Translations under genes and position numbers: made by a program | The notes under the pieces: model-generated | What the model saw: the letters and a program-made list of their open reading frames with translations, nothing else | Told to the model about the DNA's origin: nothing | Database searches by the model: none | Shown: positions 17,036 to 61,293 of the stretch, one piece after another | Layout: each line of letters starts with the position of its first letter | Position numbering within the stretch: the stretch's first letter is position 1 | Source: Malacoraja senta | Lineage: Eukaryota | NCBI GenBank assembly: GCA_038087875.1 | Contig: JAXLNO010002460.1 | Location: 1 to 64,000, forward strand | Length of the DNA stretch: 64,000 nt | Direction of reading: 5' to 3'

Positions 17036-17041
17036 AATAAA
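17036..17041 (+). terminator. Polyadenylation signal of C1
   Basis: AATAAA at the same position as in the C2 and C3 3' UTRs. Confidence 0.6.
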
Positions 17042-22110: not shown

Positions 22111-24518
22111 ATTTCTTTCTTAAATAGATCTTGGAGAAGACTGATCCAGCAGGCAGCAGCACGAACGAGTGAACGACCGTGTGGTGCCTTCGGTTTCGCC
22201 CCGGTGGTGGAAATTTTCTTGTAAGTTATACTATGTTAACACGATAATAATAACATTGATATTAACGAGTTAACATTGAAAACGTCATTGCAATCACAGT
22301 ACAACTAGAGAAAATAGCACGGCCTTTTAGCAAAACGGCAAAAAAGGCTGATTTATCAAAAAAGGCATGAAAAGGCACATGGCATTTATGGCAAAATCCT
22401 GGCTCCACTGATGAGAAGCCAAGCTCGTTCACCCTGTCACCAGCACACTCCTGTCCCGAGGCTACAGCCACGTCTTCAGCACCGGACAGCTCCCAGCCTT
22501 GAAGCAAAGCGGAAGATTCTTGTGAACTCACCCCCTTATCTTGAACGTAGCGATGCTAATTCTCAGGAGACAGAACTCCAGCAAACAAGTCTACCTGACC
22601 AACTTCTGTAATTTTCGCAACAATGGAGGTGATGTATGCACCGGCCATTCTTGTGGGGAATCTACTATTCGAGTATCATGATCATTCCACCACTCACCGC
22701 TCCCATTTTACTGCCTTTATACTGACTACATTCTAATTCATACGGGCTTCCGTGGAAATATGTGCGTGCAGAAGCTGAATAAATGCTTATTTTGCACAGA
22801 AAAACCGCCATTCATTCTTGCTTCAGATTCAAGATACCTGGACCGTGGAATACCAAAGCCCACACTATACTGGCAAATAACGTGTTTGGCCTGAGGGGAC
22901 ACAAACTCGCGAAATGCGAGCACGTGTAAAAACATATATACAAGGAGGGTATTGTCATGTGTGTAACCATGATATATGATGGATAATTTATGCAGATATT
23001 CCCTTCCCAACTGACTCGGTAAATCTCCAATCACAGTTCAGGAAGCCCAATGTTCAGAGCAATAAAAAATATCAAATCGTACACCAGCTCCATTTTATCT
23101 CCAGTGTGTTGATAAAGCATTGGCCAAATTTCACAATGGAAGAAATCTAAACCCGAAGGCAGGAAGTGTGGCTGTCCTTTCCATGGGGTGTCTTGCTTCG
23201 GTACAAACTTTCAACTTTGGACCTGGCTACAATGTGATTTCAAGACCCATTGACCCAGGAACCAATATTTGGCCTCGCGAGTGTTGACGATTGAGGAAGG
23301 AGGGTTGTGAGAAAGAGGGAAGGAGAAGATCGTCCGTCTGAATCTCACTCTATCCCTCCTCCTTCGGTCCCCCATCCCTACGGACTTCCAACTCCTTCCT
23401 TGCCCACCTTTCCATCCCCTGGGCTGTGACTCACTCCTCAGCTTGTCTCCCCACTCTTCCTCCTTCCCATCGTCCCTTCCCCTCTCAATTCTTCCATCCA
23501 TCTCCCGTCAATTGCGCTGTCGCTTTCAACAGGGCAGAAGGCAGCAGGGATTCACCCGTTATTTAAAATGCAGAACGGAATTGATATATGCCGACAGCCG
23601 CCAGAAAGAAATACTCTCACCAGCTGCGGTGGTGGTGCACTGTCTACTTCGTGGGAGTAGAGAAAATCTAAACGGGAACAAGTCTTCGGCCCAAGAAAGC
23701 TGAAACAGGAACTGAAACCGAGAAGCAGTGCAGCGGAGGGACGATGATGAACTGATAACAAACCCAGCCCCGCCCACCCTGTCACATACCAGAGGCTGCA
23801 GCCTCGGCACAGGCGACCCCTAACAACGGATTCAATTTAACTTCTGTGCTGCACCGTCTGTGTTCTACATGCTACGTAAACTCTTTCCGTGTTTTTAATT
23901 ATTCAGTCCCCCTCCACTTTACATTGCAGCCTCTAAACTGCACAAATTGTTCTCCTGGCCATGACAGAGAGAGAAAGGGGATGTGTAACGTGAAGCTCAG
24001 GGAACATCATCTCACCTTCTGACTAAACTCGGTACCTAGCCTACATTGTAACCACTTCAAATAACCAGCCATTGCAGTTTGTGTCTGAATTGATCAATTC
24101 TGGTGAAAGGTAATTGCCCGCAATGTAACTTCAGGTTTAAAGTTCTTCACAGGTGCGGCCTGATCACCTGAATATTTCCAGCAATTGTTAAATTTACTTT
24201 ATTTATTATCGTTCCCAAACATTAAATGTCTTGTTATAATCTTATCATCACTGCCTTCCAATTACCCAGTCCCCATTCTTTCCAGTACCCCAGCAATGGA
24301 ACTTCCCGCCGTTCTTCCCTGATATCCCATGTCCAACGCTGCCGCGATGGAGCGCAGAGAGACGAATCTCCACCCTCCTCCCACCTGGCGTCAGAATGGG
24401 AAGAGCTCCCAAGATAACGAGACACACACGTAAATAATTCCTGCATTGATCATCTTTATTGGTAGTTTGACGTCGTTGCAGATGGTCAGTCTGATACTAA
24501 TGAAGAATTACAAACACT

Positions 24519-24524
24519 TTTATT
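24519..24524 (-). terminator. Polyadenylation signal of C2
   Basis: AATAAA on the minus strand ~255 nt after the stop, matching C1 and C3. Confidence 0.65.
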
Positions 24525-24778
24525 AATCAGATCCATGCCTGTGGCCTGAGAAAACAATTTTGATGAAGCTAAGTTACTGCCACTTTAACCGGTGTCGCCT
24601 AAAGGTGAAAGAAACAGAACAATCACTCGAGTACAAATAATCCAATAACACAATGGAAATCGGAGAACGCGGATCGGAAGCATGGAATACAGAGAACAGC
24701 GGGCGCACACAGTGGGAGGAAGATGAGATGAGTGATCTCCCGTTGATCAGGGAGCAAACACGCCCGGAGCCGCTCACT

Positions 24779-25101
24779 TTAACAGCTGGATTGTGTGAGA
24801 GTGGCGGATATTTTCGAGGCTGCTCCTTGTTGAACTGTGCAGGAGTACAACTTCCCACTGCTCCAGTCTGCGCCGCGCACAGTCAGGTAGCTGCTGAGAC
24901 TGAAGGTGTTGTCCGTGTCCCGCCTCACCGCGCTGGTTTGCACCTCACTGCTCGGCGGACTCCCGTCCACTGTCCAGCTGACGGCGGGGAAGCCCGCGGA
25001 TAGTTTACTGACCAGGCAAACTAAGGTGCCCGCTCCTTTAGCGGACATTTCCTCGTCTGACGGCCCCAGCAGTTTCACTGAAGGGTCTGGGAGCTGCGAA
25101 G
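24779..25101 (-). CDS. IgL: Ig light-chain constant exon C2 (intact)
   Basis: Acceptor ttgcag; ASQLPDPSVKLLGPS..TLVCLVSKL..VSWTVDG..FSLSSYLTV..LYSCTVQQ..LTQSSC*; C1-set Cys/Trp/Cys and terminal Cys. Confidence 0.97.
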
Positions 25102-26012
25102 CTGCAATGGGAACAAGAGAAGACATGTTTCAGGTGACGGAAGAGCTCGGTCATCTCAGCATTTGACAGAAGCGCGAGTGAGAGGTTGCAGCTTCCTCAA
25201 GTGGGGACGCGAGTCTCACTGCGGGACGTGGCCATGGAGGTCACCGCATGGATCAACACTGGGGAACTAGAGATGTGAGGCAAAGTTCCTGTTTTAGGGT
25301 CCTGCTGGTGACTCGCTGGTTCACAGCATCAGCCTCACCACCACTCCCGGGTTTACCCCGGCCTGTGCACATGAGCTGATTGCGGGAGAGTCCCACAGGG
25401 AGATATCACTTGGCCTCAGTGCCTCTGGTTAGTGAGGGAAGGGATCCATGATCCCATTACCGACCTCCAACCAGTGACCCCTCGCTCTGGGACCAACGAG
25501 TGCCGGTGGGGAATCTACTCCAATTGGTGAGGCTTTCCGGCACCGAGTCATGAACGGAGCCGAGACGCACACCGGGACCAGAAGCGACTTCGGGTCAGTT
25601 CAATGTGCCCACTGACTGAGCCACTAGCTACACGTTCCTCCTCTTCCCTTCGCCCCATCACTGATGTCCCCGCTGTGCCCCCCCCCCCCCCGCCCCCCAC
25701 TGCTGCCTGGAGAATAAACACATCTCAAACTCAGGATCGCCCCAGAGGGCGAGGTCAGCGGCTGCGCCATGTCGAGCTTCACGGAGCTGGACAGGGCAGG
25801 TCGCCCTGTGACCTGTGACGGTGCCGAGGGATTCGGGTCCCATTCACTGTGGGGGAGGGCAGGTGCGATTCTCCCCAGACCCGGAGCTCCGGCCTCAGTC
25901 GGTGCAGCGACGGCAATCGCTGAGCAAAGGAGCGGCGGTCAAGGGGAGAGATCGCAGGAGAGGAGGCAAGGACTGGGGAACTGGAGATGGGCTTTTATTG
26001 GGCGGGTGCCTG

Positions 26013-26072
26013 CAGGTGAGTTCGTAGTCACCGGGAGGATTGGAGTTTCCGTGAAATTCCGGGGGAGATTCC
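26013..26072. promoter_or_regulatory. Putative J-C intronic enhancer of cluster 2 (E-box plus three kB-like sites)
   Basis: CAGGTG at 26013; TGGAGTTTCC, GTGAAATTCC and GGGAGATTCC within 26041-26072. Confidence 0.55.
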
Positions 26073-26599
26073 GCTGTGGGATCCTCATACAATAGTGAAA
26101 CGTATAGTTCCACTGCTTCAACAACCCGGACTGTCTCCAGTCGCCAATGTCCTGTCCCCACTGTGACACCGGGCTCCACTTTAGGAAGCTGGGGGCCCTC
26201 ACGTTCACTTGTATCAAACCGGCACAAAAGCGGACAAACTAACTGGAGTAACACCGCGCAAACTCAGAGATGAAGTTAGTCTCAGAAACGCAATATTCAC
26301 AAGCACATGCAGAGACAGAGCAACCGCACCACAAAGAGAACTGATTAACCGAGAGTGCACCTTTTTGAAATATCAAACAAGCTTCACGAAATAGAGAATG
26401 TGGTCATTAAAATACAGTAACAATTCACTGAACACATCTATATTTATTTGAACTGGTGCTGGACACAGAACTCAAATGGATTGCAAAATAAAAATGTCTC
26501 GATAAAATTAGCCAGAAAATAATAAAGTTTAAAGTATTAGTTGCCAACTGACCGTATTCTCGCGGTTAGTAATTGCGGGATGATTTCCCAGACACTTAC

Positions 26600-26636
26600 C
26601 TGTAACAAAGAGCTTGGTCCCTGGGCCGAACACCCC
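26600..26636 (-). CDS. IgL: Ig light-chain J2 segment
   Basis: GVFGPGTKLFVT with FGxG motif; canonical donor G|GTAAGT. Confidence 0.97.
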
Positions 26637-26674
26637 CACAGTGTGTGGTTCCGGCTTCAGCCCTGACAGTTATC
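26637..26674 (-). other. J2 recombination signal: perfect heptamer, weak nonamer, 22-nt spacer
   Basis: CACAGTG 26637-26643; best nonamer ACAGTTATC 26666-26674 (5/9 to ACAAAAACC). Confidence 0.75.
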
Positions 26675-26992
26675 CCGGGCCCTGGAATCAGACATAAAAC
26701 ACGGTCAAACGCTCCAGTTTCCGCATGAAAGTCGACTTCACACATCCCGAGTGTCCCCGCCGGTGAGGGGCGGGAAGGGATGAACTCACAGCCGCATCGG
26801 CACGTTCAACATTAAACGGCAACGAATCCCAGCAGTGGGCGGCGGGACTCTGAAACTACAACAAAAAAAAAGAAATATTGAAATTGGAAAGTACTGTATA
26901 AAGGATAAAATTAAAGCGACTTTGTGAAGAATGAAAGATTAGAATGTTTTCATCGATTCAAAGATGTAAAGTGCATCATGTTTGTTGCCTCC

Positions 26993-27020
26993 AGTTTTTG
27001 TTTTACCTTCTCTCACTGTG
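26993..27020 (-). other. V2 12-bp-spacer RSS
   Basis: CACAGTG-agagaaggtaaa-ACAAAAACT on the minus strand. Confidence 0.97.
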
Positions 27021-27344
27021 TGTAAGTACTGCTCGCTGTAAACCACTTCATACAGTAATAGACGGCAGCGTCATTCAACTCCGCCTTGCTTATGATCAAC
27101 TGGTAAACGGTGGCGGCGCTGTTGGCTTTCGATGTGAAACGGTCGCTGCTAAACCCAGACCCATAGGTCGGGGTACTCTCTGTGTAATGATACCGGAGGA
27201 TCCATTGAGGAGTGGTTCCCGGTATCTGTTTGTACCAATAAGAATATCCGTTATCCTTTATTCCGACATTGCATTCCAGCGTGGCCGTGTCCCCTGGATT
27301 CACCGACACAGTCGCAGGTTGGGTTACGGTCTGACACTCTGCAG
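27021..27344 (-). CDS. IgL: Ig light-chain V2 exon (sigma-like), intact
   Basis: QTVTQPATVSVNPGDTATLECNVGIKDNGYSYWYKQIPG..YGSGFSSDRFTS..YQLIISKAELNDAAVYYCMKW; long CDR2 and YGSGFSS.RFTS typical of sigma-type V. Confidence 0.95.
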
Positions 27345-27448
27345 CTGTAAAGTAGAAGGAATTCAATTTTAAGCATTGACTCTTTAATGTGACCCCCAGA
27401 GCCCACATCACACCCGCTGACAATGCTGACTTGCAGCCCTGTACTTAC

Positions 27449-27494
27449 AGCTCAGCCACAGTGCCAGAGACCAGAAAAAGCACAGCGTTTGCAT
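27449..27494 (-). CDS. IgL: Leader exon of V2
   Basis: MQTLCFFWSLALWLS + T|GTAAGT; phase-1 intron; splices in frame to SAEC|QTVTQ. Confidence 0.93.
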
Positions 27495-27574
27495 CGTTAC
27501 TGCCCTCGGTTTCCTGCCTCACTCCAGCCGCTGTATCTGTGACAGACTGTGGACGCCGCTGCCGATGGAACCCA

Positions 27575-27616
27575 CTTATACACCCATTTACACAGGAAGC
27601 AAATGCGTGCAAATCA
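27575..27616 (-). promoter_or_regulatory. V2 promoter: decamer TGATTTGCAC and TATAAG
   Basis: One mismatch to the Ig light-chain decamer TNATTTGCAT at 27607-27616; TATAAG at 27580-27575. Confidence 0.75.
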
Positions 27617-28159
27617 GGGCGGGTCACACTGAGCGACCGGAGCGCGGATCTGAAACCCTCCCATTCGCCATCAGACACGGTCGGGTTGAGGCGGTGACAC
27701 GGTCAGCCACTGGCTGGTCTGTTAAACACAACCCGTGAATGAGCAGGTCGTTTGTTGCCTGATATTCCCCAAGTTCTCCCTCCATCCCCCTGAGTCAGTG
27801 GTTGCAACACTCCATCCCTCAGTCCAGAGATGCCTCTCACACCTCCAGTCACAACAGGGTGGAACAGTGGAGTCTTCCTGTTCCCACATCAATAATCCAG
27901 ACACAAGAGACTGCAGATGCTGGATTCTTGAACAAAAATGAAACTGCCGCTAGATCTCAGCGGGTCCGGCAGCGTCTCTAGAGGGAAACCCCTCTTGACC
28001 AGAAACGTTGTCTGTCTATTCGCTCCACAGTCGCTGAATTCCTTCAGGAGTCTATTTTGTTACTCAATAATTTAGACTGTTAAAACTCAGCCTTACTGAT
28101 GATATAGTGTATTCAATTCAATTTGAAGACACAACATTGGGTTGGTGGTAAGAGGAAGA

Positions 28160-29375
28160 GGATGGTTTTGAAGGATTGTTTCCCAAATGGGAGGTTTGTG
28201 ACTAGTGGTGCGGCACAGGGCTGGTACTGCTCCACTGCAGTTTGTCACATTAATTCATGATGGGGATTCTCCCTCCATTTCCCTGATTCAGTTGTTGCCG
28301 CACCTCATCTCTGTCCAGAGATGCTCCTTACACCTCCAGTCACAACAGTGTGCGACAGTACAGGCTTCAGACGCAAGAGATTGAAGATGCTGTCACATTA
28401 AATCATGATGGGGAGGAAAATAGGTGTCATTATTACTAAGTTTCCGGAAGGCATCAAAATTGGTGGAAAAGTGGGCAGTGAGGAATGCTCTCTAACCTTA
28501 CAACAGGATATTGATCAACTGGGAAAATGACAATGTAATGGTAAATGGAATTTACTCATACAAGTGCAAAGTGATGCAGTTTGAAGCATCAATCAGGCAA
28601 GGACATAATAATGACTGGCAGGACCCTGGGTAGTATTGCTGAAAGGAAACATAGGGGTAGATGTACATTGTTCCCCAAAGGTAACAACACCAGTTTACAA
28701 GATGGTGATGAAGGCATGTGGCATGCTGTTGCTTAAAAGATTTGGAAGGTCATGTCATGGTTGTACAAAATGTTAGTTAGACTGCACATGGAGTATTGCT
28801 GGGGCTCTATAAGGCACTGGTCATGTTGCATTTGGAGTACTGTGAGCAGATTTGGACTCCATATCTGAGCAAGGATGTGCTGGCATTGGAGAGTGTCCAG
28901 AGGAGGTTTACAAGAATAATTCCAGGAATGAGTGGGTTAGTGATATGATGAGCATTTGATAGCACTGGGCCTCTACTCGCTGGAGTTTAGAAGTTTGAGG
29001 GGTGACCTCATTGAAACTTACAGAATAATGAAAGGCATAGATAGAGTGGATGTGGAAAGGATGTTTCCACTGGTGGGAGAGTCTAGGTCCAGAGGTCGTA
29101 GCCTCAGAATTAAAAGGCTCTCTTTTAAAAAGGAGTTGAGGAGGAACTTCTTTATTCAGAGGATAGTTAATCTGTGGAACTCATTGCCATAGAGGGCTGT
29201 GGAAGCCAAGTTAGAGGATATTTTTAAGGCAGAGATAGACAAGTTCTTGATTAGAACAGGTATCAAGGGTTATGGGGAGAAGGCAGGAAAATGGGATTAG
29301 GTGGCAGAGATCAGCCATGATTGAAAGGCGGAGTAGATGATGGGCCAAATGGCCTAATTCTACTATAACATGTGA
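28160..29375 (+). mobile_element. Degraded CR1 LINE fragments (two generations)
   Basis: LGLYSLEFRSLRGDLIETYRIMKG..RSRGRSLRI..LWNSLP and a CR1 3' UTR. Confidence 0.85.
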
Positions 29376-29789
29376 ACTTGTATGCAGTTCCCATCGCTGT
29401 GCTGTGGGCAGAATGTAATTAAACCAGAGAGGAACCAAAGAAGATCTACAATGATGTAAGTTGGATTGGAGGGCTTGAGTTAAGAGAAAGATGTGGATAA
29501 GGTGGGACTTTTCCCTTAAATGAAAGAAACTCAGGGGTGACCTGATAGATGTTTATAGCATTATTTAAGATAGATAGTAGTCACAGGGACACCAATTCCT
29601 CCCTTTGTGGGAGAAAATCTACCATATGTACCTGGACTTTCTCTATCTCCAATCCCATCTGTGCCCTCTGCAGTGACCCAGCAACTCGCCAGTTGCCCTT
29701 GACCAACAATGGAAGGGCCTTGCCCATCACATTCTCCAGGCATCTCTGGATGGACAGCAATTGTCGGCTCTGCCAGTGACAGCCACATT

Positions 29790-30350
29790 CAAAAATGTGG
29801 AAATCAGAAGTTGACCAGAGTTTCTGTGTCTGAGGCAAAGCGTTGAGTAAATGTAGTACTGGAATCAGTCCCACTGAGTTTACACTAGTATTTGTCTTCC
29901 AGGACTCCCAGGAATTAAATAAGTTCATTGTGGGTAAGTAAGTCAATAGGTAATTGAATAGTGATGGTATTTTGTGTGTATCCCTGACTTGGTAATTGAG
30001 AGTGACTAATTTAAAAAAAATGGCAGGGAATCTCTGAACCATGTGAATGGACACCCAGTGAAAAAAGGAGACTTTGGATGCTTCCCAATTACTGGGGAAT
30101 CTCAGGTAGAGAATATGTTGGCAGCTGAAGCAGTTTGAGCACTGGATCTGAAGCTCGAGCAACAACAGTCCATCCCCAAGGCCGAATGTTTCATGTGCAA
30201 CAGGTTTCAGGGACTGGTCATCCTGCAGGTAAAGTGAGTGCAGGCAGCTGGGGAGCGGGAAACCATCAGAGAGACAAAGCAGCAGCAGATTGGTCAGGAC
30301 ATCCCTGATGGCATTCTGTTCTGTAACTGAATGATATTCAGGACTCTGAA
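29790..30350 (-). mobile_element. Old CR1-type 5'/ORF1 remnant, mirror copy of 48520-48900
   Basis: LELQIQCSNCFSC-like frame; gtcccactgagtttacac..ggaattaaataagtt matches the rc of 48845-48900. Confidence 0.55.
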
Positions 30351-30354
30351 TGGA

Positions 30355-35900: not shown

Positions 35901-35964
35901 ATTAATAAAAAGCAGAATATTAAGACCATATATGCTACTCGAAGTTAAAGTGGGTCTGCTAGAC

Positions 35965-38351: not shown

Positions 38352-38386
<35 letters not shown>

Positions 38387-45500: not shown

Positions 45501-46829
45501 ATGCAAAGTCCTTTAGCCAAGCAGTTGCCTCTTGATCTGCTGTATGAAGGGTGACAAGTCCTCCTTTAAGCTGTAGTATTCGGAGAGCAGGTCCAACTGC
45601 TAGGTGCTCTTGAGGCTGGTCGTTGTTGCTGCTTTCGGCTTTGGGATAATGACTAGGATTCTTTGACTTGGCTCTCAGGCGTCGTCTTGTAAAATTTAGT
45701 CTGCTGGAAGGATCATTGGCTTCCCCAGGCGAGCCTGGGTACTGACGGGGGGCGCGACGAGAACGCTGATCCATAGTCCCCCTGCTGATGTGGACCTGTG
45801 TCACCTTGACTTGTGCTTTTCATTAAAACATGCACATACACCTCTAGATAGCTCAGTTCTTGCACTGTTTTTACAATTGTACACTCTGGTTTGTATTGCA
45901 CTTTCAGGTTCCTTCTACCAAACAGTAACTCCCATCATTCTTCTTTGTTAATTTATATATTGGACAAAGTCAACATAAGTTGATAGAAGGGACTTTCAGC
46001 AGGGGCTGAACCAGATAACTGGTTAAGAGATTATTATCTGAGTTCAGATAGGTTGGCAAAGTGGAGACCTGGGTGTCGTTGTACACCAGTTGCTGAAGGC
46101 AAGCAGTGAGGAGGCCAAGGAGGAGGTTGTCAATCTCACCAAACCTTTGACTCTCAATCGTGAGCAATTGTGGAATACCCTCCTCAAGTATGGCTCCCAA
46201 TGAAATACATCTCCAGCTTATGTTTATTCTGCAAATGTTATACAACAGAATCATTCGTTCTGAAAACCAATGGTGAATGAAGGTTCCCAGTTGCACAAAC
46301 ATTTTCTCAATGTTTCTTGCTGCATGTTGCATCAAATTGGGAGTGGAGATGATGGGAATCATCTGGGAATGGGAAACTAACTGGAAATTGTTAAACCTCT
46401 GGTAACAGCAATCTAGACAGAAAGCTAGCTAAACCTTAGTAGTCAAACTCCACATGGAGAGGATGCTGCTATTGACGTGCCATTCACCATTGCATTAAAT
46501 GTGTCAGCACACATTTGGGGGGAAATAGTACTTGAAGACCAAGACTGCAGCACTGGCACAAACCCGTGGTCTACCGGGGAACTGTAATTCCTGCTTCCTA
46601 TCTGTTTGTGACAACTGAACTTGCTACAGCAGGCATCACATGGCACTGCAGAAGAGCCGCCGCCAAGGAATCCATCAAATTCATTGCAAACACCAGTGAT
46701 ACAATGTCATTGTTCACTCGAAGATAAACATCACCTGTTCTGTGGCCCTATCATGTTTAGTTGCCTGTGTTGTGCAGGTTGATTTGTTCGCATACCCTTA
46801 TTTGTACTCTTGGAACACATAGACTATTA

Positions 46830-47600
46830 TAAGCTCTGTCATGGGTGAGGTCACACGCAAACTGGAGGAACAGCCCCTCATATTGCAGTTTACAACCCAA
46901 CAGTATAAAGTCATTTCAAGTCAATTCAAATAATTTCCCCATCTAACCCTTCTCTCGTTTCTATGCCTCCTCTACCACCTGGGTCCACATCTATTTCTCC
47001 CACCATCTGCCCCAGTCACCCTGCTCCACCCCTTCACTCATCTCCTGTCCCCATGTCCCCATTTTCCTGTTATCTGTCCCTCTTTCCCTTCCCCTCTGCC
47101 ACTACCCTTCCATATCACCCTCTCTGGCTTTATACGATAATGACAATGACACAATCTTCTGACTTCTGAACTTCTGACAAGGTCTCACATGGCAGCAGGT
47201 TAAAACAGTAAAATGCCATGGGACCCATGGGTTGTGGCTCCTCGTCTGACTGATGGAGTAGAGGAGAATGAAAGCTGGAGAAGGTGGGTGGGGATGGGAA
47301 AAATACTGATAAGTCTGTGTCAGATGAGTGGTTGCGATTGGCAGATGGGTGGACTAAGTGACAAAGGCTGGAGACTAAAAGGGCACAAAAGGGTGTCAGT
47401 TAAGGAGAGCAGAGGACGAGTGAAATATAAACCTCCTCTATTGCATTTGGAGCTCCTTATGTGGCCTCCTTTACATCAGTGAGGCCAAGCATTTTGTAGA
47501 CAACCATTTCACCAAATACTTGCACTCTGTCCACCTAGGTCTGCTGGATCTACCCGTTCCTGTCCTTTTAACTCCCCTTCCCTTTCCCATACTGATCTTT
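46830..47600. mobile_element. Degraded Penelope (GIY-YIG) fragments
   Basis: RKLEEQPLI at ~46855 and YISEAK..YLHSVHLGLLDLPV..NSPSLSHTDL at ~47470-47600 resemble Penelope GIY-YIG endonuclease ends. Confidence 0.6.
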
Positions 47601-48519
47601 CAGACCAGGATGGTGATGGACAAGATTTATAGGCATGCTCAAAGCCCTTTGAAGTAATACAACATCACCACTAATTCCAGGGACTCTATGGCCCATGAGC
47701 ATTCAGGTCGAAATAGAGCATTCGGCTTTGAAACTTGTATTTGTTGAGGTCATGTGTCAGCAACACAGACAACCCCATCTGTGATGGAGGGAGTGGACCA
47801 GCTCACTAACTACACACCCTCATACTGAAGGGTCTGTGATTCCACATTATCCTCATTGGCCAGTTCATGTCCAACAAAACTGGAAAGCACACTTCGTCCC
47901 TAGGGATTGTCTAAGAAGATTCACACCACATTCACCCTCCTCTCATTCACCCTCCTCTCATTGCTTCCCTACCCTACCATGTATGGAGGAATATTTAGTC
48001 CTTCATTGCCCTTCATTAATTATACCCCATTGCCACAATATTACATGCTCTCTTTCAACTTCTTTACAATGCTACTTTCCTGAGTTCATTCTCTGCCAAA
48101 CCATATTAAACCTCTCCTCTTTCTCCGGCTAAACTTCCCATGATGTGGCGCCTTCTAGCTCTTTGAGGAAGCATCCTGCAGGCCTTGGATGTGCCCATTC
48201 TGCAACTGGATCCTCCACTTCCTGACCCATAGGCCAAAATCAGTAAGGATGTCTGACAACTGCTCCATGATATTTCTCAACACTGGTGCCCTGTAAGGCA
48301 TCGTTCTCAGCCCCTTACTGTACTCCCAATACACTCACAACTGTGTGGCCAAATTCTGCTTTAACTTTGTTTACCGATTTGCAGATGATATCACGGTATC
48401 ACAACAATCAGATGGAGTAAAAGAAGGGCAGAGAGAGCAGGGTGCCACACAGATGCCCTGACCCATCTGCCACTTCTTTGTCTCTCTAGTGGTTTCCTGC
48501 TCCCCCACTGCCAGCACTC

Positions 48520-48900
48520 ACTTTAGGTGGAGGATGACCACCTCCTGAAACCTGCTGCACATGAAACATTCGGCCTTGGGATCAAGGTCCATTTGAGCAT
48601 GGACTGTTGGTGCTCGAGCTCCAAACGCAGAGCTTGAGCTGATCTAGCTGACAACACTTCCTGTATCTAAGCTTGTCCAGGAATCAGGAAGCATTGTAAG
48701 TTCCCAGATTCCACTGTGCGCCCATTTCCATGGCTTTGAGATTCCCACCCATGACTCTTTTTATTAGTCCCTCTCAATTAATAAAGAATTCAATCAAAAC
48801 ACTATTACTATTCAATGGACCATTGCCCAACATAAACCAAACAAACTTATTTAATTCCCTGGGTCTTTGTTGAAGACAATTCTTGTGTAACTCACTGGGA
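48520..48900 (+). mobile_element. Old CR1-type 5'/ORF1 remnant, mirror copy of 29790-30350
   Basis: cctgaaacctgctgcacatgaaacattcggccttggg is the rc of 30170-30212. Confidence 0.55.
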
Positions 48901-50482
48901 CCCTGTCTCCTGCTCTATGTTTACACAAAGTATTTCACTAGACCCTGGGACGGATCAAGCTTTAATTTTCCACATTCTTGGAATATGGATGTCACTGGCA
49001 AAGCCAGTTGTTGCCATTCCAGAGGTGCCTGGACAGATTATTGGCTGAGGCCCTTCTATTGGTGGTTGTAGACCACTGACTGGGTTGCTGGGAAACTTCT
49101 GAGGCAGGCTGTGGGACTGGAAACATTCACAGGGAAGCATGGGAGGTTCCCTCCACAAAGAGTTAATGAGTCTTCTGGTGTTTCAGGCCATCAACAATTC
49201 ATTGTGACTGAGACCATTTTCCATCCTCACGCTTAGACTGCATTCGTAGGTTTAGGGATTCCTTAAATGATACAGCACTGAAACAGGTCCTTTGGCACAC
49301 GTTGTCCATTCCAACCAGGATGCCAATCTCAAATAATCCAATTTCCCGGCATTTGACACACCTGTAAACTATTCATATCCATGCACTCTAAATGCTTGCT
49401 CCTCTGACAGCTCATTCCATATACCCACCCCCATTGAGTGAAAAACCAGACCCTTATAGCACATCTTCATTTTTCTCCTCTCACCTTCAAACGATGCCCT
49501 CTTATATTAGACTGTGACTATCTACCTTATCTATACCCCGCACACTTTATAAGCTTCTAGAAAGTTCACCTCTTGCCTTCCTTCACTCAAGGGACTAAGG
49601 TTCCAGCCTTTCCAATCTCTCCTTATAAATCAAACCCTCCAAACTAAGCTTGTGCACCTGATCTGAACTGTTTCTAGATCCAACATATATTCTTTGAGCA
49701 TGGCAACAGGAACCGAGCACAATATGCCAAGTGCAGCCTAAACAAGGGCCCCTCGGTCCTGCAACACTGTCTGAGTCAAATTTATTTTTCCCATTCATTT
49801 TCCTACTTTCCCAGTTGATAAAGTTTGGTTGCAAACAGTATTTCCCACATGTCCACTATACCCCAATTCTTGCGTCATATACAGATTTAGTAATCATACC
49901 ACCTTCATTCTCATCCAAATCATGAATACATGTGACAAGCAACATTGGCCCTAACACCAGTCCCTGTAGCACACCACTGGTCACAGGCAAACTTGAGAAA
50001 CAGTGCTCTACTATCACCCTCTCTGTCTTACCACCAAGCCAATGTTAGATTCTCAATTGTCGCGGTGGGTTTCAACTTAAAGTCTAAATTAGTACGAAAA
50101 AAACAAACTGACTGAGGAACTCCGAGTTTAAAGAATCATCTGTGGAGGAAATTGGACAGACCGCGTTTTGGGCCAAGATTGAAGTAGTGTCCCGACCGGA
50201 CATCTCCAATCTCTTGTGCCTGAAGTCTGTACTGTCCCACCGTGTTGTGTCTTGAGGTGTGAGGAGCATCTCTGGACTGAGGGATGGAGTGTTGCAACTA
50301 CTGACTCAGGGGAATGTTTGGCGAAGGTGGGGGATATCAGACAACGAACGACCTGCTCATTCACGGGTTGTGTTTAACAGACCAGTCAGTGGCTGCCAGT
50401 GTCACCGCTTCAACCCGAACGTGTCTGATGGCGAATGGGAGGGTTTCAGATCAGTGCTCCGGTCGCTCAGTGTGACCCGCCC

Positions 50483-50524
50483 TGATTTGCACGGATTTCC
50501 TTCCTGTCTCAATGGCTCTATAAG
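50483..50524 (+). promoter_or_regulatory. V3 promoter: decamer TGATTTGCAC and TATAAG
   Basis: Decamer 50483-50492 and TATAAG 50519-50524, about 80 nt before the leader ATG. Confidence 0.75.
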
Positions 50525-50602
50525 TGGGTTCCATCGGCAGCGGCGTCCACAGTCTCACAAATACAGCGGCTGGAGTGAGGCAGGAAACTGAGAGCAGCAA
50601 CG

Positions 50603-50648
50603 ATGCAAACGCTGTGCTTTTTATCGTCTCTGGTACTGTGGCTGGGCT
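50603..50648 (+). CDS. IgL: Leader exon of V3
   Basis: MQTLCFLSSLVLWLG + T|GTAAGT. Confidence 0.93.
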
Positions 50649-50742
50649 GTAAGTACAGGTGGCAAGTGTGCGGGTGTGATGTGGGCTCTTGGGGTCACAT
50701 TAAAGAGTCAATGGTTAAAGATGAATTCCTGCTCTTTTACAG

Positions 50743-51066
50743 CTGGAGAGTGTCAGACACTGACTCAACCTGCGACTGTGTCGGTGAATCCAGGAGACAC
50801 GGCCACGCTGGAATGCAACATCGGGATAGATGATGGCTACTATGTTAATTGGTACAAGCAGACGTTGGGAACAACTCCTCAATGGGTTCTCCGGTATTAT
50901 CACACACACGACGCCCCGACCTATGGGTCTGGGTTCACCAGCGACCGTTTCACATCGAAAGGCAACAGCGCCGGCACCGTTTACCAGTTGATCATAAGCA
51001 ACGCAGAGGTGAATGACGCTGCCGTCTATTACTGCGGCAAATGGGTTTCAGCGAGCAGTACTTACA
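50743..51066 (+). CDS. IgL: Ig light-chain V3 exon (sigma-like), intact
   Basis: QTLTQPATVSVNPGDTATLECNIGIDDGYYVNWYKQ..LRYYHTHDAPTYGSGFTSDRFTS..DAAVYYCGKWVSASSTY. Confidence 0.95.
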
Positions 51067-51094
51067 CACAGTGAGAGAAGGTAAAACAAAAACT
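51067..51094 (+). other. V3 12-bp-spacer RSS
   Basis: CACAGTG-agagaaggtaaa-ACAAAAACT. Confidence 0.97.
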
Positions 51095-51408
51095 GGAGGC
51101 AACAAGCACGATGCACTTTACATCTTTGAATCGATGAAAACATTCTAATCTTTCACTCTTCACAAAGTCGCTTCAATTTTACCCTTTATACAGTATTTTC
51201 CAATTTTAATATCTCAATTTTTTGAAGATTCGGAGTCCCGCCGCCCACTGCCGGGATTCGTTGCCGTTTAATGTCAAGCCTGGCGATGCGGCTGTGAGTT
51301 CATCCTTTCCCGCCCCTCACCGGCGGGGACACTCGGGATGTGTGAAGTCGACTTTCATGCGGAAACTGGAGCGTCTGACCGTGTTTTATGTCTGATTCCA
51401 GGGCCCGG

Positions 51409-51446
51409 GATAACTGTCAGGGCTGAAGCCAGAACCACGCACTGTG
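51409..51446 (+). other. J3 recombination signal: perfect heptamer, weak nonamer
   Basis: GATAACTGT - 22 nt - CACTGTG. Confidence 0.75.
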
Positions 51447-51483
51447 GGGGTGTTCGGCCCAGGGACCAAGCTCTTTGTTACAG
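51447..51483 (+). CDS. IgL: Ig light-chain J3 segment with GC splice donor
   Basis: GVFGPGTKLFVT; donor reads G|GCAAGT. Confidence 0.95.
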
Positions 51484-52010
51484 GCAAGTGTCTGGGAAAT
51501 CATCCCGCAATTACTAACGGCGTGAATGCGGTCAGTTGGCAACTAATACTTTAACCTTTATTATTATCAGGCTAATTTTATCCAGAAACTTTTATTTTGC
51601 AATCCATTTGAGTTCTGTGTCCAGCACCAGTTCAAATAAATATAGATGTGTTCAGTGAATTGTTACTGTATTTTAATGACCACATTCTCTATTTCGTGAA
51701 GCTTGTTTGATATTTCAAAAAGGTGCACTCTCGGTAAATCAGTTCTCTTTGTGGTGCGGTTGCTCTGTCTCTGCATGTGCTTGTGAATATTGTGTTTCTG
51801 AGACTAACTTCATTTCTGAGTTTGCGCGGTGTTACTCCAGTTAGTTTGTCCGCTTTGTGCCGGTTTGATCCAAGTGAACGTGAGGGGTCCCAGCTTCCTA
51901 AAGTGGAGCCCGATGTCACAGTGGGGACAGGACATTGGCGACTGGAGACAGCCAGGGGTTGTTGAGGCAGTGGAAATATACGTTTCACTATTGTATGAGG
52001 ATCCCACAGT

Positions 52011-52070
52011 GGAATCTCCCCCGGAATTTCACGGAAACTCCAATCCTCCCGGTGACGACCAACTCACCTG
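52011..52070. promoter_or_regulatory. Putative J-C intronic enhancer of cluster 3 (three kB-like sites plus E-box)
   Basis: GGAATCTCCC 52011, GGAATTTCAC 52023, GGAAACTCCA 52033, CACCTG 52065 (second CACCTG at 52232). Confidence 0.55.
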
Positions 52071-52957
52071 CAGACACCCGCCCAATAAAACCCCCTCTCC
52101 CGTTCCCAAGTCCTTGCCTCCTCTCTCCTGCCATCTATCCCCTTGACCGCCGCTCCTTTGCGGGAACCGCTGCTCAGCGATTGCAGTCGCTGCACCGACT
52201 GAGGCCGGAGCTCCGGGTCTGGGGAGAATCGCACCTGCCCTCCCCCACAGTGAATGGGACCCGAATCCCTCGGCACCGTCACAGGTCACAGAACGACCTG
52301 CCCTGTCCAGCTCCGTTTGAGCTGTGTTTATTCTCCCGGCAGCAGTGGGGGGGCACAGCGGGGACATCAGTGATGGGTGGGGTGGGGCGAAGGGAAGAGG
52401 AGGAACGTGTAGCTAGTTGCTCAGTCAGTGGGCACATTGAACTGACCCGGGGTCGCTTCTGGTCCCGGTGTGCGTCTCGGCTCCGTTCATGACTCGGTGC
52501 CGGTAAGCCTCGCCAGTTGGAGTAGATTCCTCGCCAGCACTGGTTGGTCCCAGAGCAAGGGTTCACTGGTTGGAGGTCGGTAGTGGGATCACGGATCCTT
52601 TCCCTCACTAACCAGAGGCACTGAGGCCAAGTGAAGCCTCCCTGTGGGACTCTCCCGCAATCAGCTCATGTGCACAGGCCGGGGTAAACCCGGGAGTGAT
52701 GGCGAGGTCACCGAGTGGCTCATGCTGTAAACCAGCGAGTTACCAGCAGGACCCTAAAACAGGAACTTTGCCTCACATCTCTAGTTCCCCAGTGTTGACA
52801 TCCATGCGGCGACCTCCATGGGCACCGCTCCGTCCCTCAGTGAGACTCGGGTCCCCACTAGAGGAAGCTGCAACCTCTCACTCGCGCTTCTGTCAAATGC
52901 TGAGATGACCGAGCTCTTCCGTCACCTGAAACATGTCTTCTCTTGTTCCCATTGCAG

Positions 52958-53280
52958 CTTCGCAGCTCCCAGACCCTTCAGTGAAACTGCTGGGGCCGTC
53001 AGACGAGGAAATGTCCGCTAAAGGAGCGGGCACCTTAGTTTGCCTGGTCAGTAAACTATCCGCGGGCTTCCCCGCCGTCAGCTGGACAGTGGACGGGAGT
53101 CCGCCGAGCAGTGAGGTGCAAACCAGCGCGGTGAGGCGGGACACGGACAACACCTTCAGTCTCAGCAGCTACCTGACGGTGCGCGGCGCAGACTGGAGCA
53201 GTGGGAAGTTGTACTCCTGCACAGTTCAACAAGGAGCAGCCTCGAAAATATCCGCCACACTCACACAATCCAGCTGTTAA
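52958..53280 (+). CDS. IgL: Ig light-chain constant exon C3 (intact)
   Basis: Same protein as C2; acceptor ttgcag; TAA stop. Confidence 0.97.
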
Positions 53281-53536
53281 AGTGAGCGGCTCCGGGCGTG
53301 TTTTCTCCCTGATCAACGGGAGATCACTCATCTTCCTCCCACTGTGTGCGCCCGCTGTTCTCTGTTTTCCCTGTTTCCGATCCGCTTCCCACTGTGCTAT
53401 TGAAACATTTGTACTCGAGTTGATTGTTGTTCTGTTTCTCCCACCTCTAGGCGACACGGGTTAAAGTGATCAGTAACTTGGCCATCAGAAATTTCAACAT
53501 GAATTGTTTTCTCTGGCAACAGGCATGGATCTGATT

Positions 53537-53542
53537 AATAAA
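53537..53542 (+). terminator. Polyadenylation signal of C3
   Basis: AATAAA ~255 nt after the stop. Confidence 0.65.
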
Positions 53543-53988
53543 AATAATAAATATGTTTGTAATTTTTCATCAGTATCAGACCGACGGTCTGCAACGACGG
53601 CAAACTACCAATAAAGATGATCATTGTTCGAATTATTTGCCTGTGTGTGTGTGTGTGTCGTTAAATTGGAAGCTCTTCCTATTCTGACACCGGGTGTGAG
53701 GGGGGGGGGGGGGGGGGAGGAGACTCGTCTCTCTGCTCCGGTTCGTGTCCTAGTTCCGTGAAGTGAGAGGAAAGCGCTCCTTCGCGGCAGCCTTGGACAT
53801 AGGATATCAGGGAAGACCGGTGGAAGTTCCATTGCTGGGATACTTTAAAGTATGACAAGTGAAGGGTTGATAGTGATAATAAAATTGCAATAAAACATTT
53901 GGTATTTGTGTAGGATAATAAAAGAGGTAAATATAACGACGGTTGGGAGTATTCACGTGGTCAGACAGGATCGGCAGAGAGCGTTTAA

Positions 53989-61230: not shown

Positions 61231-61293
61231 CACACACACACCCTCCATCTCACAAATGCACACACACACGCTCCATACACACACACCCTCCAT

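Follow-up and report, generated by a model that had tools for sequence, protein, structure and literature searches.

The 64,000-nucleotide stretch of Malacoraja senta DNA analysed here (hereafter the window) contains two sigma V-J-C immunoglobulin light-chain (IgL) miniclusters placed head to head and facing away from each other, cluster 2 on the minus strand at 24.2-27.9 kb and cluster 3 on the plus strand at 50.2-54.0 kb. The locus raises the question of how two complete clusters came to stand in this arrangement, and what has kept parts of them alike while the DNA between them decayed. The answer is, very probably, an ancient inverted duplication of a sigma unit followed by unequal decay, with selection and gene conversion both acting on the gene portions. 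Named homologs, the length of CDR2 and the type of recombination signal sequence (RSS) all favour sigma over sigma-2 as the isotype.

The two clusters and their counterparts in other skates

Every signal in the gene core of cluster 2 (promoter, leader, V, J, C and 3' flank; 24160-27877, minus strand) is canonical. The leader exon (27449-27494) has its ATG at 27494 and a GTAAGT donor, and is followed by a V exon with a V-set domain (27021-27344) of the V2-type lineage, to which Amblyraja P0001, Rhinoraja P0004 and Leucoraja P0060 also belong. The V-RSS (26993-27020) consists of CACAGTG, a 12-nt spacer and ACAAAAACT; the J-RSS and J (26599-26675) comprise a weak nonamer, a 23-nt spacer, a heptamer at 26637-26643 and the J segment itself (26599-26636), then a GT donor. 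The C exon (24779-25101), a C1-set domain, ends in a TAA stop at 24779-24781. Cluster 3 (core 50222-53964, plus strand) has the same parts in the right arm: a leader exon (50603-50648), a V exon (50743-51066) of the V3-type lineage common to Leucoraja P0003, a 7-12-9 V-RSS (51067-51094), the J-RSS and J (51408-51486; heptamer 51440-51446, J segment 51447-51484) and a C exon (52958-53280; TAA stop 53278-53280) with AATAAA signals some 256 nt downstream. Its J splice donor is a non-canonical GC (51485-51486), as against GT in cluster 2, Amblyraja, Leucoraja cluster 3 and Rhinoraja cluster 2. In both arms the leader and V exon are open, the V-RSS has a 12-nt spacer and J lies behind a CACTGTG heptamer, albeit with a weak nonamer, and the proteins encoded by the two C exons are identical. 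To judge from their sequences both arms look functional, and both clusters are presumably expressed, although the GC donor of cluster 3 and the weak J nonamers count against this. The original prediction of two intact clusters as the arms of a palindrome is borne out.

The two cores align in inverted orientation at 86.9% over 3845 columns about an axis at ~39.06 kb, and the leader ATGs (27494 on the minus strand, 50603 on the plus strand) have their midpoint at 39048, in agreement with the mirror at ~39.0 kb first proposed for L, V, J and C. The palindrome had, however, been given as ~29 kb long (24200-53600), and in this respect the proposal was right about the inverted arms but set their extent too small, since detectable inverted homology runs from 23729 to 55484. 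The right arm is broken by a LINE insertion (53988-55136, minus strand, with a 351-aa open reverse transcriptase (RT) ORF at 54081-55136); once this is taken out, the arms can be followed outwards through a pair at 24052-24300 / 53828-55216 (70%) to an outermost pair at 23729-23827 / 55383-55484 (69.6%). In other words, ~32 kb is the size of an old and decayed inverted duplication. Identity between the arms is, as predicted, very uneven: 100% in J, 99.4% in the C exon (two mismatches), 95.5% in the J-C intron (1430 aligned sites), 93.9% in the V-J spacer, 90.3% in the promoter, 84.9% in the V exon, 81% in the 3' flank and ~71% in the spacer between the clusters.

Two further sigma clusters lie in the window. 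Cluster 1 (15349-17536, plus strand), outside the palindrome, is a pseudogene with a broken V frame and a C stop changed from TAA to TCA, in which no J was found; cluster 0 (12711-13565, minus strand) is a remnant made up of a C exon with an internal deletion and a promoter fragment. Together they form a second head-to-head pair, and the strand changes from each of the four clusters to the next (minus, plus, minus, plus).

The same divergent pair is found on one chromosome in Leucoraja (genes at 17427516-17429982, minus, and 17452986-17455721, plus; 23.0 kb apart against 23.1 kb in the window) and on one chromosome in Rhinoraja (14371038-14373381, minus, and 14393275-14395978, plus; 19.9 kb apart). 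Coverage of the Rhinoraja spacer is complete, and a palindrome is present there too, its cores matching at 92.5-98.8% and its spacer blocks at 70-79%.

Layout and spacing have therefore persisted in three genera of two families, which could be taken to mean that the head-to-head arrangement is kept because it is used, either through shared regulatory DNA of the spacer by which the two promoters are coordinated, or through inversional joining of V2 to J3 or V3 to J2. On a given strand, the V-RSS12 of either cluster and the J-RSS23 of its partner flank their coding segments on the same side, as the coordinates show, a geometry that allows joining by inversion; in zebrafish, inversional rearrangement between IgL clusters does take place (PMC3014032). 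Nevertheless, such a role is rather unlikely as the reason for the layout. Reviews place rearrangement in cartilaginous fish within clusters (PMC5192425), Rhinoraja has lost 3.7 kb at the centre with its genes intact, about three quarters of the spacer is without conservation between the arms, and sawfish clusters have mixed orientations, 46-80 kb spacing and germline-joined genes. Moreover, the layout would be expected to persist with or without such a role, since unequal crossing over does not delete inverted repeats. Inversional joining as a secondary rearrangement would, in any case, add to the ancient inverted duplication rather than replace it.

Conversion and selection along the gene

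The phylogenetic signal switches along the gene: promoter, V exon and 3' flank group by orthology, the J-C intron and C exon by species. Informative sites divide, orthologous to paralogous, as 19:0 in the promoter, 30:4 in leader and V and 29:4 in the 3' flank (78:8 in these flanking parts together), against 1:7 in the J-C intron and 0:6 in the C exon (1:13 together). Region trees unite cluster 3 of the window with that of Leucoraja at 100% support both in promoter plus V and in the 3' flank, where the approximately unbiased (AU) test rejects a clade of the window paralogs (p=1.5e-92 and p=1e-5, respectively). In the C segment it is orthology that is rejected (p=0.007) and the window paralogs that pair, at 92/85, a moderate support owing to few variable sites. 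The two Rhinoraja paralogs form a pair in all regions (100/100). The clade hypotheses compared here were set up once the data had been given an initial inspection. In all three species the paralogs are closer to each other in the C segment (99.5, 98.5 and 100%) than are the orthologs (93.4-97.8%), and the longest perfect run between the arms, 317 nt, was matched in none of 20000 permutations. The site counts, the AU test and this run all favour gene conversion, one of the two processes originally proposed. The homogenised segment begins in the V-J spacer and includes J, the J-C intron and the C exon, at 51220-53283 on the plus strand of the right arm, with its left partner at ~24776-26866.

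Purifying selection alone, on the C exon or an intronic enhancer for example, might be thought sufficient to keep this half of the gene alike, given that the C protein is constrained across elasmobranchs and the J coding sequence is invariant among skates. Selection of this kind, however, neither draws paralogs closer together than orthologs nor makes the topology switch within one gene. Furthermore, the J-C intron and C exon are only ~77% identical between skate and sawfish, such that constraint cannot explain the intron identity between the arms; part of the Leucoraja cluster 3 intron (region 52100-52700) is not alignable at all, and in Rhinoraja the promoter, V exon and 3' flank are homogenised as well, i.e. 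the whole gene core. Selection as the sole agent is accordingly very improbable. The grouping by species indicates, rather, arm-to-arm gene conversion in the J-C intron and C exon, while orthologous topology, together with 83-85% conservation to sawfish, points to constraint on promoter, leader and V. The V exon has a dS of 0.27, with a dN/dS of 1.75 in the CDRs and 0.27 in the framework. What had been put forward as 'selection and/or conversion' therefore appears to be both, in different segments.

The spacer, its centre and the assembly

The 22-kb spacer between the clusters divides into the upstream part of the cluster 2 unit (27878-39115), which has mirrored blocks, arm-specific remnants and LINE fragments, and that of the cluster 3 unit (39973-50221). 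Where three mirrored non-coding blocks had been noticed, alignment gives ten collinear inverted blocks with 2815 aligned nt and a chain score of 1504; the direct orientation reaches 198 and three unrelated control regions 0-134. The mean identity of the ten blocks, 71%, counts alignable blocks only and probably underestimates the divergence of the arms. The best preserved, block E, lies ~8.5-9.2 kb upstream of the cluster 2 leader (35969-36692, minus strand), and its right copy (41827-42550, plus strand) is 75% identical to the left copy, 79-81% to sawfish copies and 95% to the Leucoraja ortholog. LINE-derived remnants are mirrored at 28.1-29.3 and 49.4-50.05 kb. The block at 29665-30322 / 48434-49104, first described as an old CR1 remnant, is genuinely mirrored, but its assignment to CR1 is unverified, a search of the block for RT homology having found none.

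At the centre, the predicted limits of pairing (38862/40273, ~1.4 kb apart) are exact, but the stretch between them contains two copies of a dispersed ~95-nt repeat in inverted orientation to each other (39016-39115 / 39973-40072), which leave a loop of 857 bp unpaired (39116-39972). The loop continues the left unit at 39118-39529, which is homologous to 938-1346 of the sawfish unit L005; 39530-39972 had no match to anything compared. Of seven copies of the ~95-nt repeat in the window, six lie in the spacer; the two that border the loop are 86% identical, above the adjoining arm DNA, a value that origin neither before nor after the duplication explains cleanly.

An assembly gap (40771-40989) falls in the non-coding right-arm spacer and therefore breaks no reading frame. 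Long-read assemblers are known to make false fold-back joins, and the gap is only ~1.3 kb from the axis; the contig to its right (40990-61293) might thus be mis-oriented or misplaced, or the inverted duplication falsely made by the assembler. Such duplicates would be near-identical, yet the spacer arms are not. The contig of the left arm runs through the axis and the loop into the first right-arm blocks (40273-40759), and the mirrored blocks stay in register beyond the gap. Leucoraja L002 is collinear through the gap position, matching 40416-40761 and 40990-42076 on one strand ~100 nt apart, and in Rhinoraja L012 the sequence of 37102-38114 runs on into that of 41785-42601 on one strand, linking left arm to right arm. 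With divergent pairs at the same spacing in two independent assemblies, an artefact is close to refuted, and the structure is not undermined by the gap.

Equally far-fetched is the notion that neighbouring clusters face apart by chance and the blocks are independent insertions of common repeats, for although real dispersed repeats (LINE fragments and the ~95-nt repeat) are present, the ten blocks keep strict mirrored order, the main ones have no other copy anywhere in the 64-kb window, and the same blocks recur, in unchanged order and comparably far upstream of V, both in the Rhinoraja palindrome and in several of seven sawfish sigma units, which makes them sequence of the ancestral unit and excludes this case.

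Origin and comparison with known systems

With its ortholog in Amblyraja, Leucoraja or Rhinoraja each arm shares 89-95% identity, whereas the two arms share about 71-75% with each other in the spacer; the ancient inverted duplication is thereby supported, and it long predates the split of these genera. An ancestral sigma unit, of at least ~12 kb of upstream DNA and a 3.7-kb V-J-C minicluster, would have been copied in inverted orientation in the skate lineage, before the Rajidae and Arhynchobatidae separated, so that two clusters transcribed away from each other met at their distal upstream ends. The asymmetric junction, with a single-copy loop that continues the left unit, would fit, as we infer, an origin by fold-back priming or template switching. 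By non-coding divergence the event would date roughly to the skate-sawfish split: the block E tree has four near-equidistant lineages, with the arms as old as that split. The V protein tree disagrees, placing all skate V in one clade, sister to one sawfish V; the date is accordingly uncertain, and older V-region conversion or differences in rate may be involved. Thereafter, unconstrained arm DNA would have decayed to ~70% through substitution, reciprocal deletion and transposon insertion. Purifying selection would have kept the ~380-bp promoter, leader and V framework similar, and diversifying selection held the two V exons apart in their CDRs, such that two V lineages persist across genera. 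Recurrent non-allelic conversion between the inverted arms would even out the V-J spacer, J, J-C intron and C exon within species, with a longer tract in Rhinoraja that probably overwrote the entire core, V included.

Cartilaginous fish have several miniclusters per isotype, sigma (type IV) light chains among them, which are treated as independent units whose genomic distribution is 'not well known' (PMC5192425, PMC5985310, PMC12227049). The skate locus shares this plurality; the orientation of neighbours, their linkage distance, a shared duplication unit and concerted evolution of the C region are not described in those three papers, and, as the original prediction supposed, no description of the layout in cartilaginous fish was found in the searchable literature. 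In teleosts, IgL elements occur in opposite orientation and inversional rearrangement has been demonstrated in zebrafish (PMC3014032). The skate clusters are likewise closely linked and of mixed orientation, with a geometry that would permit inter-cluster joining by inversion, though here, unlike in zebrafish, as a geometric possibility only. Avian IGH contains direct and inverted copies of one repeat unit, with gene conversion involved (bioRxiv 10.64898/2026.09.05.749481). Inverted copies of a unit, with conversion, recur in the skate, where clusters alternate in strand. The avian arrays, however, are many, young and fast-evolving, with pseudogene donors for somatic conversion, whereas the skate pair is old and stable across genera, both arms look functional and the conversion would be germline.

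Beyond immunoglobulin loci, the P1-P8 palindromes of the human Y chromosome have inverted arms about a short unique spacer, undergo intrachromosomal conversion and are kept across species. The skate pair resembles them in its arms and spacer, in arm genes kept alike and in a layout that persists across species. Y palindromes, however, are homogenised over the whole arm to >99.9%, whereas the skate homogenises ~2 kb of each 15-kb arm in Rajidae and ~3.7 kb in Rhinoraja, the rest having decayed; moreover, the skate locus, a somatically rearranging immune gene, is not known as sex-linked.

In human IGK, the proximal and distal V-kappa regions form a pair of large segmental duplications in inverted orientation that exchange sequence by gene conversion, a tract of ~16 kb being documented (PMC11327106). 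Both, then, are inverted duplications within a light-chain locus, in which paralogs exchange sequence by non-allelic gene conversion and arm-to-arm inversion is possible. The arms of IGK are ~0.4-0.5 Mb long and >95% identical, with many V genes and a single shared J-C, whereas each skate arm is a complete, autonomous V-J-C minicluster of ~15 kb, far older at ~70%, in which conversion targets the J-C/C half instead of the V genes. The skate pair, without a precedent that could be found in cartilaginous fish, is thus an inverted light-chain duplication comparable to that of human IGK.

Anatomy and isotype of the sigma clusters

Self-comparison of the window identifies four sigma clusters on alternating strands. 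The first, c0 (12711-13565, minus), is a remnant of which a promoter fragment and an internally deleted C exon are all that is left. The second, c1 (15349-17536, plus), is a pseudogene in which the V frame is broken, the J is not recognisable and the C stop has changed from TAA to TCA. Cluster 2 (24160-27877, minus) and cluster 3 (50222-53964, plus), delimited by self-comparison and gene anatomy, each comprise a single copy of V, J and C in a common orientation, unrearranged in the germline and spanning ca 2.7 kb from ATG to stop; in other words, each has the form of the V-J-C minicluster of cartilaginous fish. In both, a 46 nt leader exon with a GTAAGT donor (ATG at 27494 in cluster 2 and 50603 in cluster 3) precedes a V exon with a Pfam V-set domain (27344-27021 and 50743-51066, respectively), which is followed by a V-RSS of CACAGTG, 12 nt and ACAAAAACT. 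The J lies ca 370 bp 3' of V, after a CACTGTG heptamer, and reads GVFGPGTKLFVT over 38 nt, its final codon split. A J-C intron of ca 1.47 kb then leads to the C exon (25101-24779 and 52958-53280; Pfam C1-set), with a TAA stop in both clusters and AATAAA signals ca 255 nt past it. The C proteins of the two clusters are identical. The candidate J nonamer, 23 nt upstream of CACTGTG, is weak (~3/9 to consensus by our own count). Amblyraja and Leucoraja share it exactly and Rhinoraja almost so; the J nonamers are weak in all skates examined.

At its J-C splice donor (51485-51486), cluster 3 reads GC (AG/GCAAGT). The same donor is GT in cluster 2, in the Amblyraja, Leucoraja cluster 3 and Rhinoraja cluster 2 orthologs, and in three sawfish genes. 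The change may denote a working GC-AG intron, a first step to a pseudogene or a base error. GC splice donors in the AG/GCAAGT context can function, and cluster 3 is for this reason probably, if not certainly, functional.

The original prediction had left the choice between sigma and sigma-2 to be settled, and the named homologs, the CDR2 length and the RSS layout all point to sigma. The C domain is 95% identical to light chains of Amblyraja radiata, 94% to those of Leucoraja erinacea and 89% to those of Rhinoraja longicauda. In a comparison composed of chains named sigma and of other isotypes, none of them labelled sigma-2, it is 76-78% identical to the nurse shark (P0019) and horn shark (P0029) chains named 'immunoglobulin sigma light chain' by their depositors, and only 41-45% identical to chains of other isotypes (P0055 and P0056). 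Both window V genes group in the V tree with relatives of P0019 and P0029. The sigma CDR2 is the longest among the isotypes, at 9-10 residues versus 7 in sigma-2 (PMC5985310); in both V exons the CDR2 has ca 10 residues and the CDR1 has 7, by our own approximate IMGT-style delimitation. The RSS layout, with a 12-spacer at V and a 23-spacer at J, is of the kappa type and not of the 23/12 lambda type. CDR2 length and the 12/23 RSS fit the sigma criteria of PMC5985310, and on sequence the clusters would be classed as sigma (type IV). In region trees the window species falls outside the grouping of Amblyraja with Leucoraja, closer to those two than to Rhinoraja, which makes it a further skate and probably a rajid.

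The palindrome and its counterparts in other skates

Inverted relative to each other, the cores of clusters 2 and 3 give an alignment of 3845 columns that is 86.9% identical, about an axis near 39.06 kb. A left arm of ca 15.4 kb (23729-39115) and a right arm of ca 15.5 kb (39973-55484, including a 1.15 kb LINE) enclose a loop of 857 bp, such that the whole forms a two-arm palindrome. That non-coding blocks of the spacer are also mirrored, as originally predicted, is borne out by a collinear-chain test on the two spacers, in which ten inverted blocks (2815 nt aligned, 71%) score 1504 versus 198 in direct orientation and 0-134 for three unrelated window regions in either orientation. The main mirrored blocks have no further copy in the 64-kb window. 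The spacer is alignable over only about a quarter of its length, at 71%, and the near-identity along the whole arm found in Y-chromosome palindromes is not seen here. The structure is, in other words, a degenerate palindrome with a local conversion tract and not a Y-type palindrome.

One pair of mirrored blocks had been labelled a CR1 remnant, a label that could not be confirmed, as Pfam, the window LINE proteins and a protein search reveal no RT homology in that block. A 266-aa ORF within it (29581-30381, minus) was treated as a chance ORF, having no Pfam domain, no likeness to the window LINE protein and no homolog among 5.8 billion proteins. RT-derived remnants are present in both arms outside that block (28.1-29.3 and 49.4-50.05 kb; tblastn with the window's own LINE proteins). 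Rfam, at gathering thresholds, gives no RNA families in 23.0-55.5 kb.

Runs of N occur at 9623-9762, 40771-40989 and 61294-61481. The second lies within the non-coding spacer of the right arm, and no reading frame is therefore at stake; ORFs across 40713-41138, which run through the gap, were disregarded. The contig that bears the left arm continues through the axis and the loop and takes in the first blocks of the right arm (40273-40423 and 40457-40759), and the mirrored blocks stay in register past the gap. On one strand of the right-arm Leucoraja locus (L002), matches to 40416-40761 and 40990-42076 lie ca 100 nt apart; on one strand of a Rhinoraja locus (L012), the homolog of 37102-38114 runs into the homolog of 41785-42601. 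At the gap, the window scaffold is matched by independent assemblies of two other species.

Of the orthologous loci in other rays, to which the original prediction had looked for a check, those of Leucoraja and Rhinoraja contain the same divergent pair. The Amblyraja locus (L001) is collinear at 91-95% with the window from 37238 down to 14797, a span that takes in the left spacer and cluster 2, the region between the clusters, c1 and the beginning of c0. In Leucoraja, L002 follows the window from 40416 through cluster 3 and beyond at 90-94%, and a second annotated protein (P0060), found by cluster-member look-up, belongs to the ortholog of cluster 2, whose locus (L011) is collinear with the window from 37784 down to c0. 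The two Leucoraja genes on CM054035.1, P0060 (17427516-17429982, minus) and P0003 (17452986-17455721, plus), are divergent and 23,004 bp apart; the leader ATGs in the window are 23,109 bp apart. Similarly divergent on Rhinoraja CM130190.1 are P0058 (14371038-14373381, minus) and P0004 (14393275-14395978, plus), 19,894 bp apart, and the two loci overlap by 107 identical bases, so that the entire spacer is covered. Self-comparison of the merged Rhinoraja sequence reveals a palindrome here too, whose cores are 98.8% and 92.5% identical and whose spacer blocks, at 70-79%, lie in mirrored order. The divergent pairs in Leucoraja and Rhinoraja argue that the architecture is older than the common ancestor of these skate genera. 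The centre of the Rhinoraja structure is short, in that 442 bp (L012 1002-1444) correspond to 3.67 kb of the window (38115-41784), the loop and inner right arm being missing; either the centre was deleted in Rhinoraja or it has grown in the other lineages.

Outside the palindrome, c0 (minus) and c1 (plus) form a second head-to-head pair (window 12711-17536; L001 19919-22490; L011 19946-22305). Their 5' regions adjoin within ca 0.5-1 kb in Amblyraja and Leucoraja; in the window they are separated by a LINE (RT ORF 13381-13953), and the V of c0 is lost. With respect to cluster 3, c1 is 91.6% identical in the C exon and 3' flank and only ca 75% in the V region, which makes it a mosaic. In Rhinoraja (L004 13538-21713, compared with window 13.6-24.0 kb) the cluster 2 ortholog is followed immediately downstream, on the same strand, by the c0 ortholog, which has a separate copy (L004 14092-14632) of the spacer block designated E (window 35969-36692 and 41827-42550). 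The segment with c1 and flank X, present in the window, Amblyraja and Leucoraja, is absent there, having been either inserted in Rajidae or deleted in Rhinoraja. Flank X, of ca 1.6 kb, occurs in three direct copies at 72-87%, namely 18142-19802 (after c1), 22407-23740 (before cluster 2) and 58396-60014 (after cluster 3).

Just beyond the 3' flank of cluster 3, a LINE at 54081-55136 (minus) carries an uninterrupted 351-aa reverse-transcriptase ORF, with which a second copy at 10580-11626 shares 81% protein identity. The element near 10.5 kb has copies at 92-94% in non-orthologous sites of L001, L002 and L011, which suggests that this LINE was recently active in skates. Short-repeat arrays, tandem or interspersed and with periods of ca 100-600 bp, are found at both window ends (1076-4304, 60130-61293 and 63118-63644); the array at 60.1-61.3 kb adjoins an assembly gap.

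Evidence for conversion and selection along the gene

Identity between the arms varies along the gene, from 90.3% in the promoter, 91.3% in the leader, 88.3% in the leader-V intron and 84.9% in the V exon to 93.9% in the V-J spacer, 100% in J, 95.5% in the J-C intron and 99.4% in the C exon, then 91.1% in the 3' UTR and 81.0% in the 3' flank. The original prediction ascribed such likeness to selection and/or conversion between the arms. Trees, AU tests and the comparison with sawfish indicate both, with selection at the promoter and V, and conversion at the J-C intron and C.

In a four-way alignment of window cluster 2, window cluster 3, Amblyraja cluster 2 and Leucoraja cluster 3, the informative sites supporting orthology and paralogy stand at 19 : 0 in the promoter, 30 : 4 in the leader and V, 5 : 4 from V-RSS to J, 1 : 7 in the J-C intron, 0 : 6 in the intron end and C exon and 29 : 4 in the 3' flank. 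The same partition emerges from region trees containing both paralogs from three species (the window species, Leucoraja and Rhinoraja) together with Amblyraja. In the promoter+V and 3' flank trees, window cluster 3 pairs with Leucoraja cluster 3 at 100% support and the cluster 2 sequences form a separate clade; in the C-segment tree the window paralogs pair (92/86). A clade of window paralogs is rejected by the AU test for promoter+V (p=1.5e-92) and the 3' flank (p=1e-5). The tests for gene conversion that had been proposed come out in its favour, since orthology is rejected in the C segment (p=0.007) and the longest perfect run between the window arms, 317 nt (52861-53177), is attained in 0 of 20000 permutations of the 279 mismatches. 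Paralogs in the C segment are 99.5, 98.5 and 100% identical in the three species versus 93.4-97.8% for orthologs. Concerted evolution is found, then, in the J-C intron and C exon of the window species and Leucoraja and in the entire gene core of Rhinoraja; in Rajidae it is absent from the promoter, the V exon, the spacer and the 3' flank. All region trees join the two Rhinoraja paralogs (100/100), which are 93-100% identical and sit closer to the cluster 2 clade. A long tract has evidently replaced the promoter, V and flank of cluster 3 by cluster 2 sequence in the Rhinoraja lineage.

Constraint cannot explain the similarity of the introns, because the J-to-C segment is only ca 77% identical between skate and sawfish, and because Leucoraja cluster 3 (L002) is unalignable with 52100-52700 of the J-C intron (identity ~0.5), where both window arms and Amblyraja cluster 2 do align. 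For the promoter and V, 83-85% identity to sawfish starts exactly where the arm identity rises (50222), and selection thus explains this half of the gene. Between the arms the V exons have a high dS of 0.27 and a dN/dS of 1.75 in the CDRs and 0.27 in the frameworks. In Rajidae these exons have thus escaped homogenisation, with differences mainly at antigen-contact sites. One cluster can display two evolutionary modes at once, in which the constant half evolves in concert with its neighbour and the variable exons are kept apart with an excess of CDR replacement. Together these modes offer a natural explanation of a uniform C region beside diverse germline V genes in a multicluster system.

Ancestry, origin and significance of the pair

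In the sawfish Pristis pectinata all seven annotated sigma genes lie on one chromosome, in the order + + - - - - + and spaced by 46-80 kb, P0005 and P0010 being a divergent pair. Their 10 kb upstream regions align with both window arms at 65-79%, in a common order and orientation relative to V, and in L005 the alignment extends almost to the window axis. A scenario in which the mirrored blocks are independent insertions of common repeats is ruled out by this collinearity. The left arm alone keeps some ancestral pieces (such as 34063-34713 and 38806-39529) and the right arm alone keeps others (such as 43065-43661 and 44262-44391), the pattern that would be expected of reciprocal loss from one ancestral unit. 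The sawfish genes (L003, L005, L006, L007, L008, L009 and L010; CM019878.1, 6.03-6.39 Mb) are germline-joined VJ in all 7 of 7 cases; at locus position ~10400-10520 the V end passes straight into J and then a GT donor, without an RSS and with varying junction lengths. In skates, 7 of 7 genes examined have V and J apart and a V-RSS of the 12-spacer type. Reviews describe germline joining for lambda and sigma-2, no description for sigma having been found in them, and the joined sigma of sawfish beside the split sigma of skates provides a case study in rearrangement loss.

Block E was considered as a specially constrained element and rejected as such, given that ca 60% of the sawfish upstream 9.5 kb aligns to one or other of the arms at 65-79%. 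Its conservation among orthologs (90-95%) is barely above that of its neighbours (85-94%), and it appears to be simply the best-preserved piece of generally slow-decaying DNA. As a marker of age it is 75% identical from arm to arm and 76-81% between either arm and the sawfish copies, and its tree is star-like, with four near-equidistant lineages (the left and the right skate arm, Rhinoraja c0 and sawfish). In the V protein tree sawfish P0013 is the sister of a single clade of all skate V genes, and in that clade the V2 type of cluster 2 is a well-supported derived lineage. A split of V2 from V3, the cluster 3 lineage, before the skate-sawfish divergence was suggested by the 80% identity of V3 to P0013 versus 78% to V2, but the single skate clade lends it no support. 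The two markers disagree; the duplication long predates the skate genera and may date from about the time of the skate-sawfish split.

With respect to the sawfish unit L005, the left arm reaches 39529 (unit position 938) and right-arm homology can be recognised no further inward than 40273 (unit position 1510), the first 410 bp of the loop (39118-39529) continuing the left unit (positions 1346-938). Fold-back (hairpin-primed) duplication or template switching predicts an asymmetric junction (PMC10622511), and one or other may have produced the inversion. The loop is enclosed by an inverted pair of a dispersed ~95-nt repeat, 39016-39115 and 39973-40072, whose two copies are 86% identical and sit at roughly corresponding points of the arms. 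With copies 80-90% alike, the repeat family seems younger than the arms, and the event is so old that the junction does not allow a confident reading. Copies of this SINE- or MITE-like repeat, 75-90% alike, are found at 21997-22090, 36752-36843, 39016-39115, 39973-40072, 42681-42763, 42839-42919 and 42962-43053, concentrated within ca 3.5 kb of the axis. The loop-bounding pair is more alike than the adjoining arm DNA, for which no explanation tried fits.

The history that we propose would begin with the inverted duplication of one sigma unit into two divergent clusters. Recombination between inverted repeats would delete no gene, giving only conversion or a flip of the spacer, and such a pair would for this reason be structurally stable. 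Germline conversion between arms would recur in each lineage, tolerated or favoured where sameness suits (J and C) and selected out, or simply rarer, at V, where the copies differ usefully. A longer tract could also become fixed, as Rhinoraja illustrates, and the remaining arm DNA would drift. It is rather improbable, in our estimation, that the head-to-head pair is a functional module and not a frozen accident, with regulatory DNA shared in the spacer, or with RAG joining a V to the other J by inverting 24 kb and conversion keeping J-C interchangeable, such that either product is a normal chain. The RSS geometry would permit V2-to-J3 or V3-to-J2 joining by inversion. Inversional joining has been demonstrated in zebrafish clusters (PMC3014032), and for cartilaginous fish reviews report rearrangement within clusters only (PMC5192425). 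If the module were real, it would give cartilaginous fish a route to receptor editing or secondary rearrangement, now restricted in accounts to bony vertebrates. Diagnostic sites (3' UTRs ca 91% identical and distinct V lineages) allow a direct test of inter-cluster inversional rearrangement in an elasmobranch, which bears on light-chain exclusion and receptor editing in sharks and rays.

The genomic distribution of miniclusters was described as 'not well known' in a 2025 Science Advances paper on elasmobranch Ig linkage (PMC12227049), and a VGP preprint does not separate the light-chain types of cartilaginous fishes. Our literature search found no account of cluster orientation or palindromes for chondrichthyan IgL, which is not proof, many subscription papers lying outside it. 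The usual account of cartilaginous-fish Ig genes is one of many independent miniclusters; here there is a concrete cross-species map of sigma in batoids. It indicates that clusters duplicate as large units of ca 15 kb or more, long upstream regions included, and that neighbouring clusters can be inverted, in an arrangement stable across skate families. The overall structure is real, old and common to skates, and is a clean natural case of segment-specific concerted evolution. Inverted segmental duplications that undergo gene conversion are familiar from Ig loci elsewhere and from sex chromosomes. The kind is thus already known, and it is this chondrichthyan example of it that is new.
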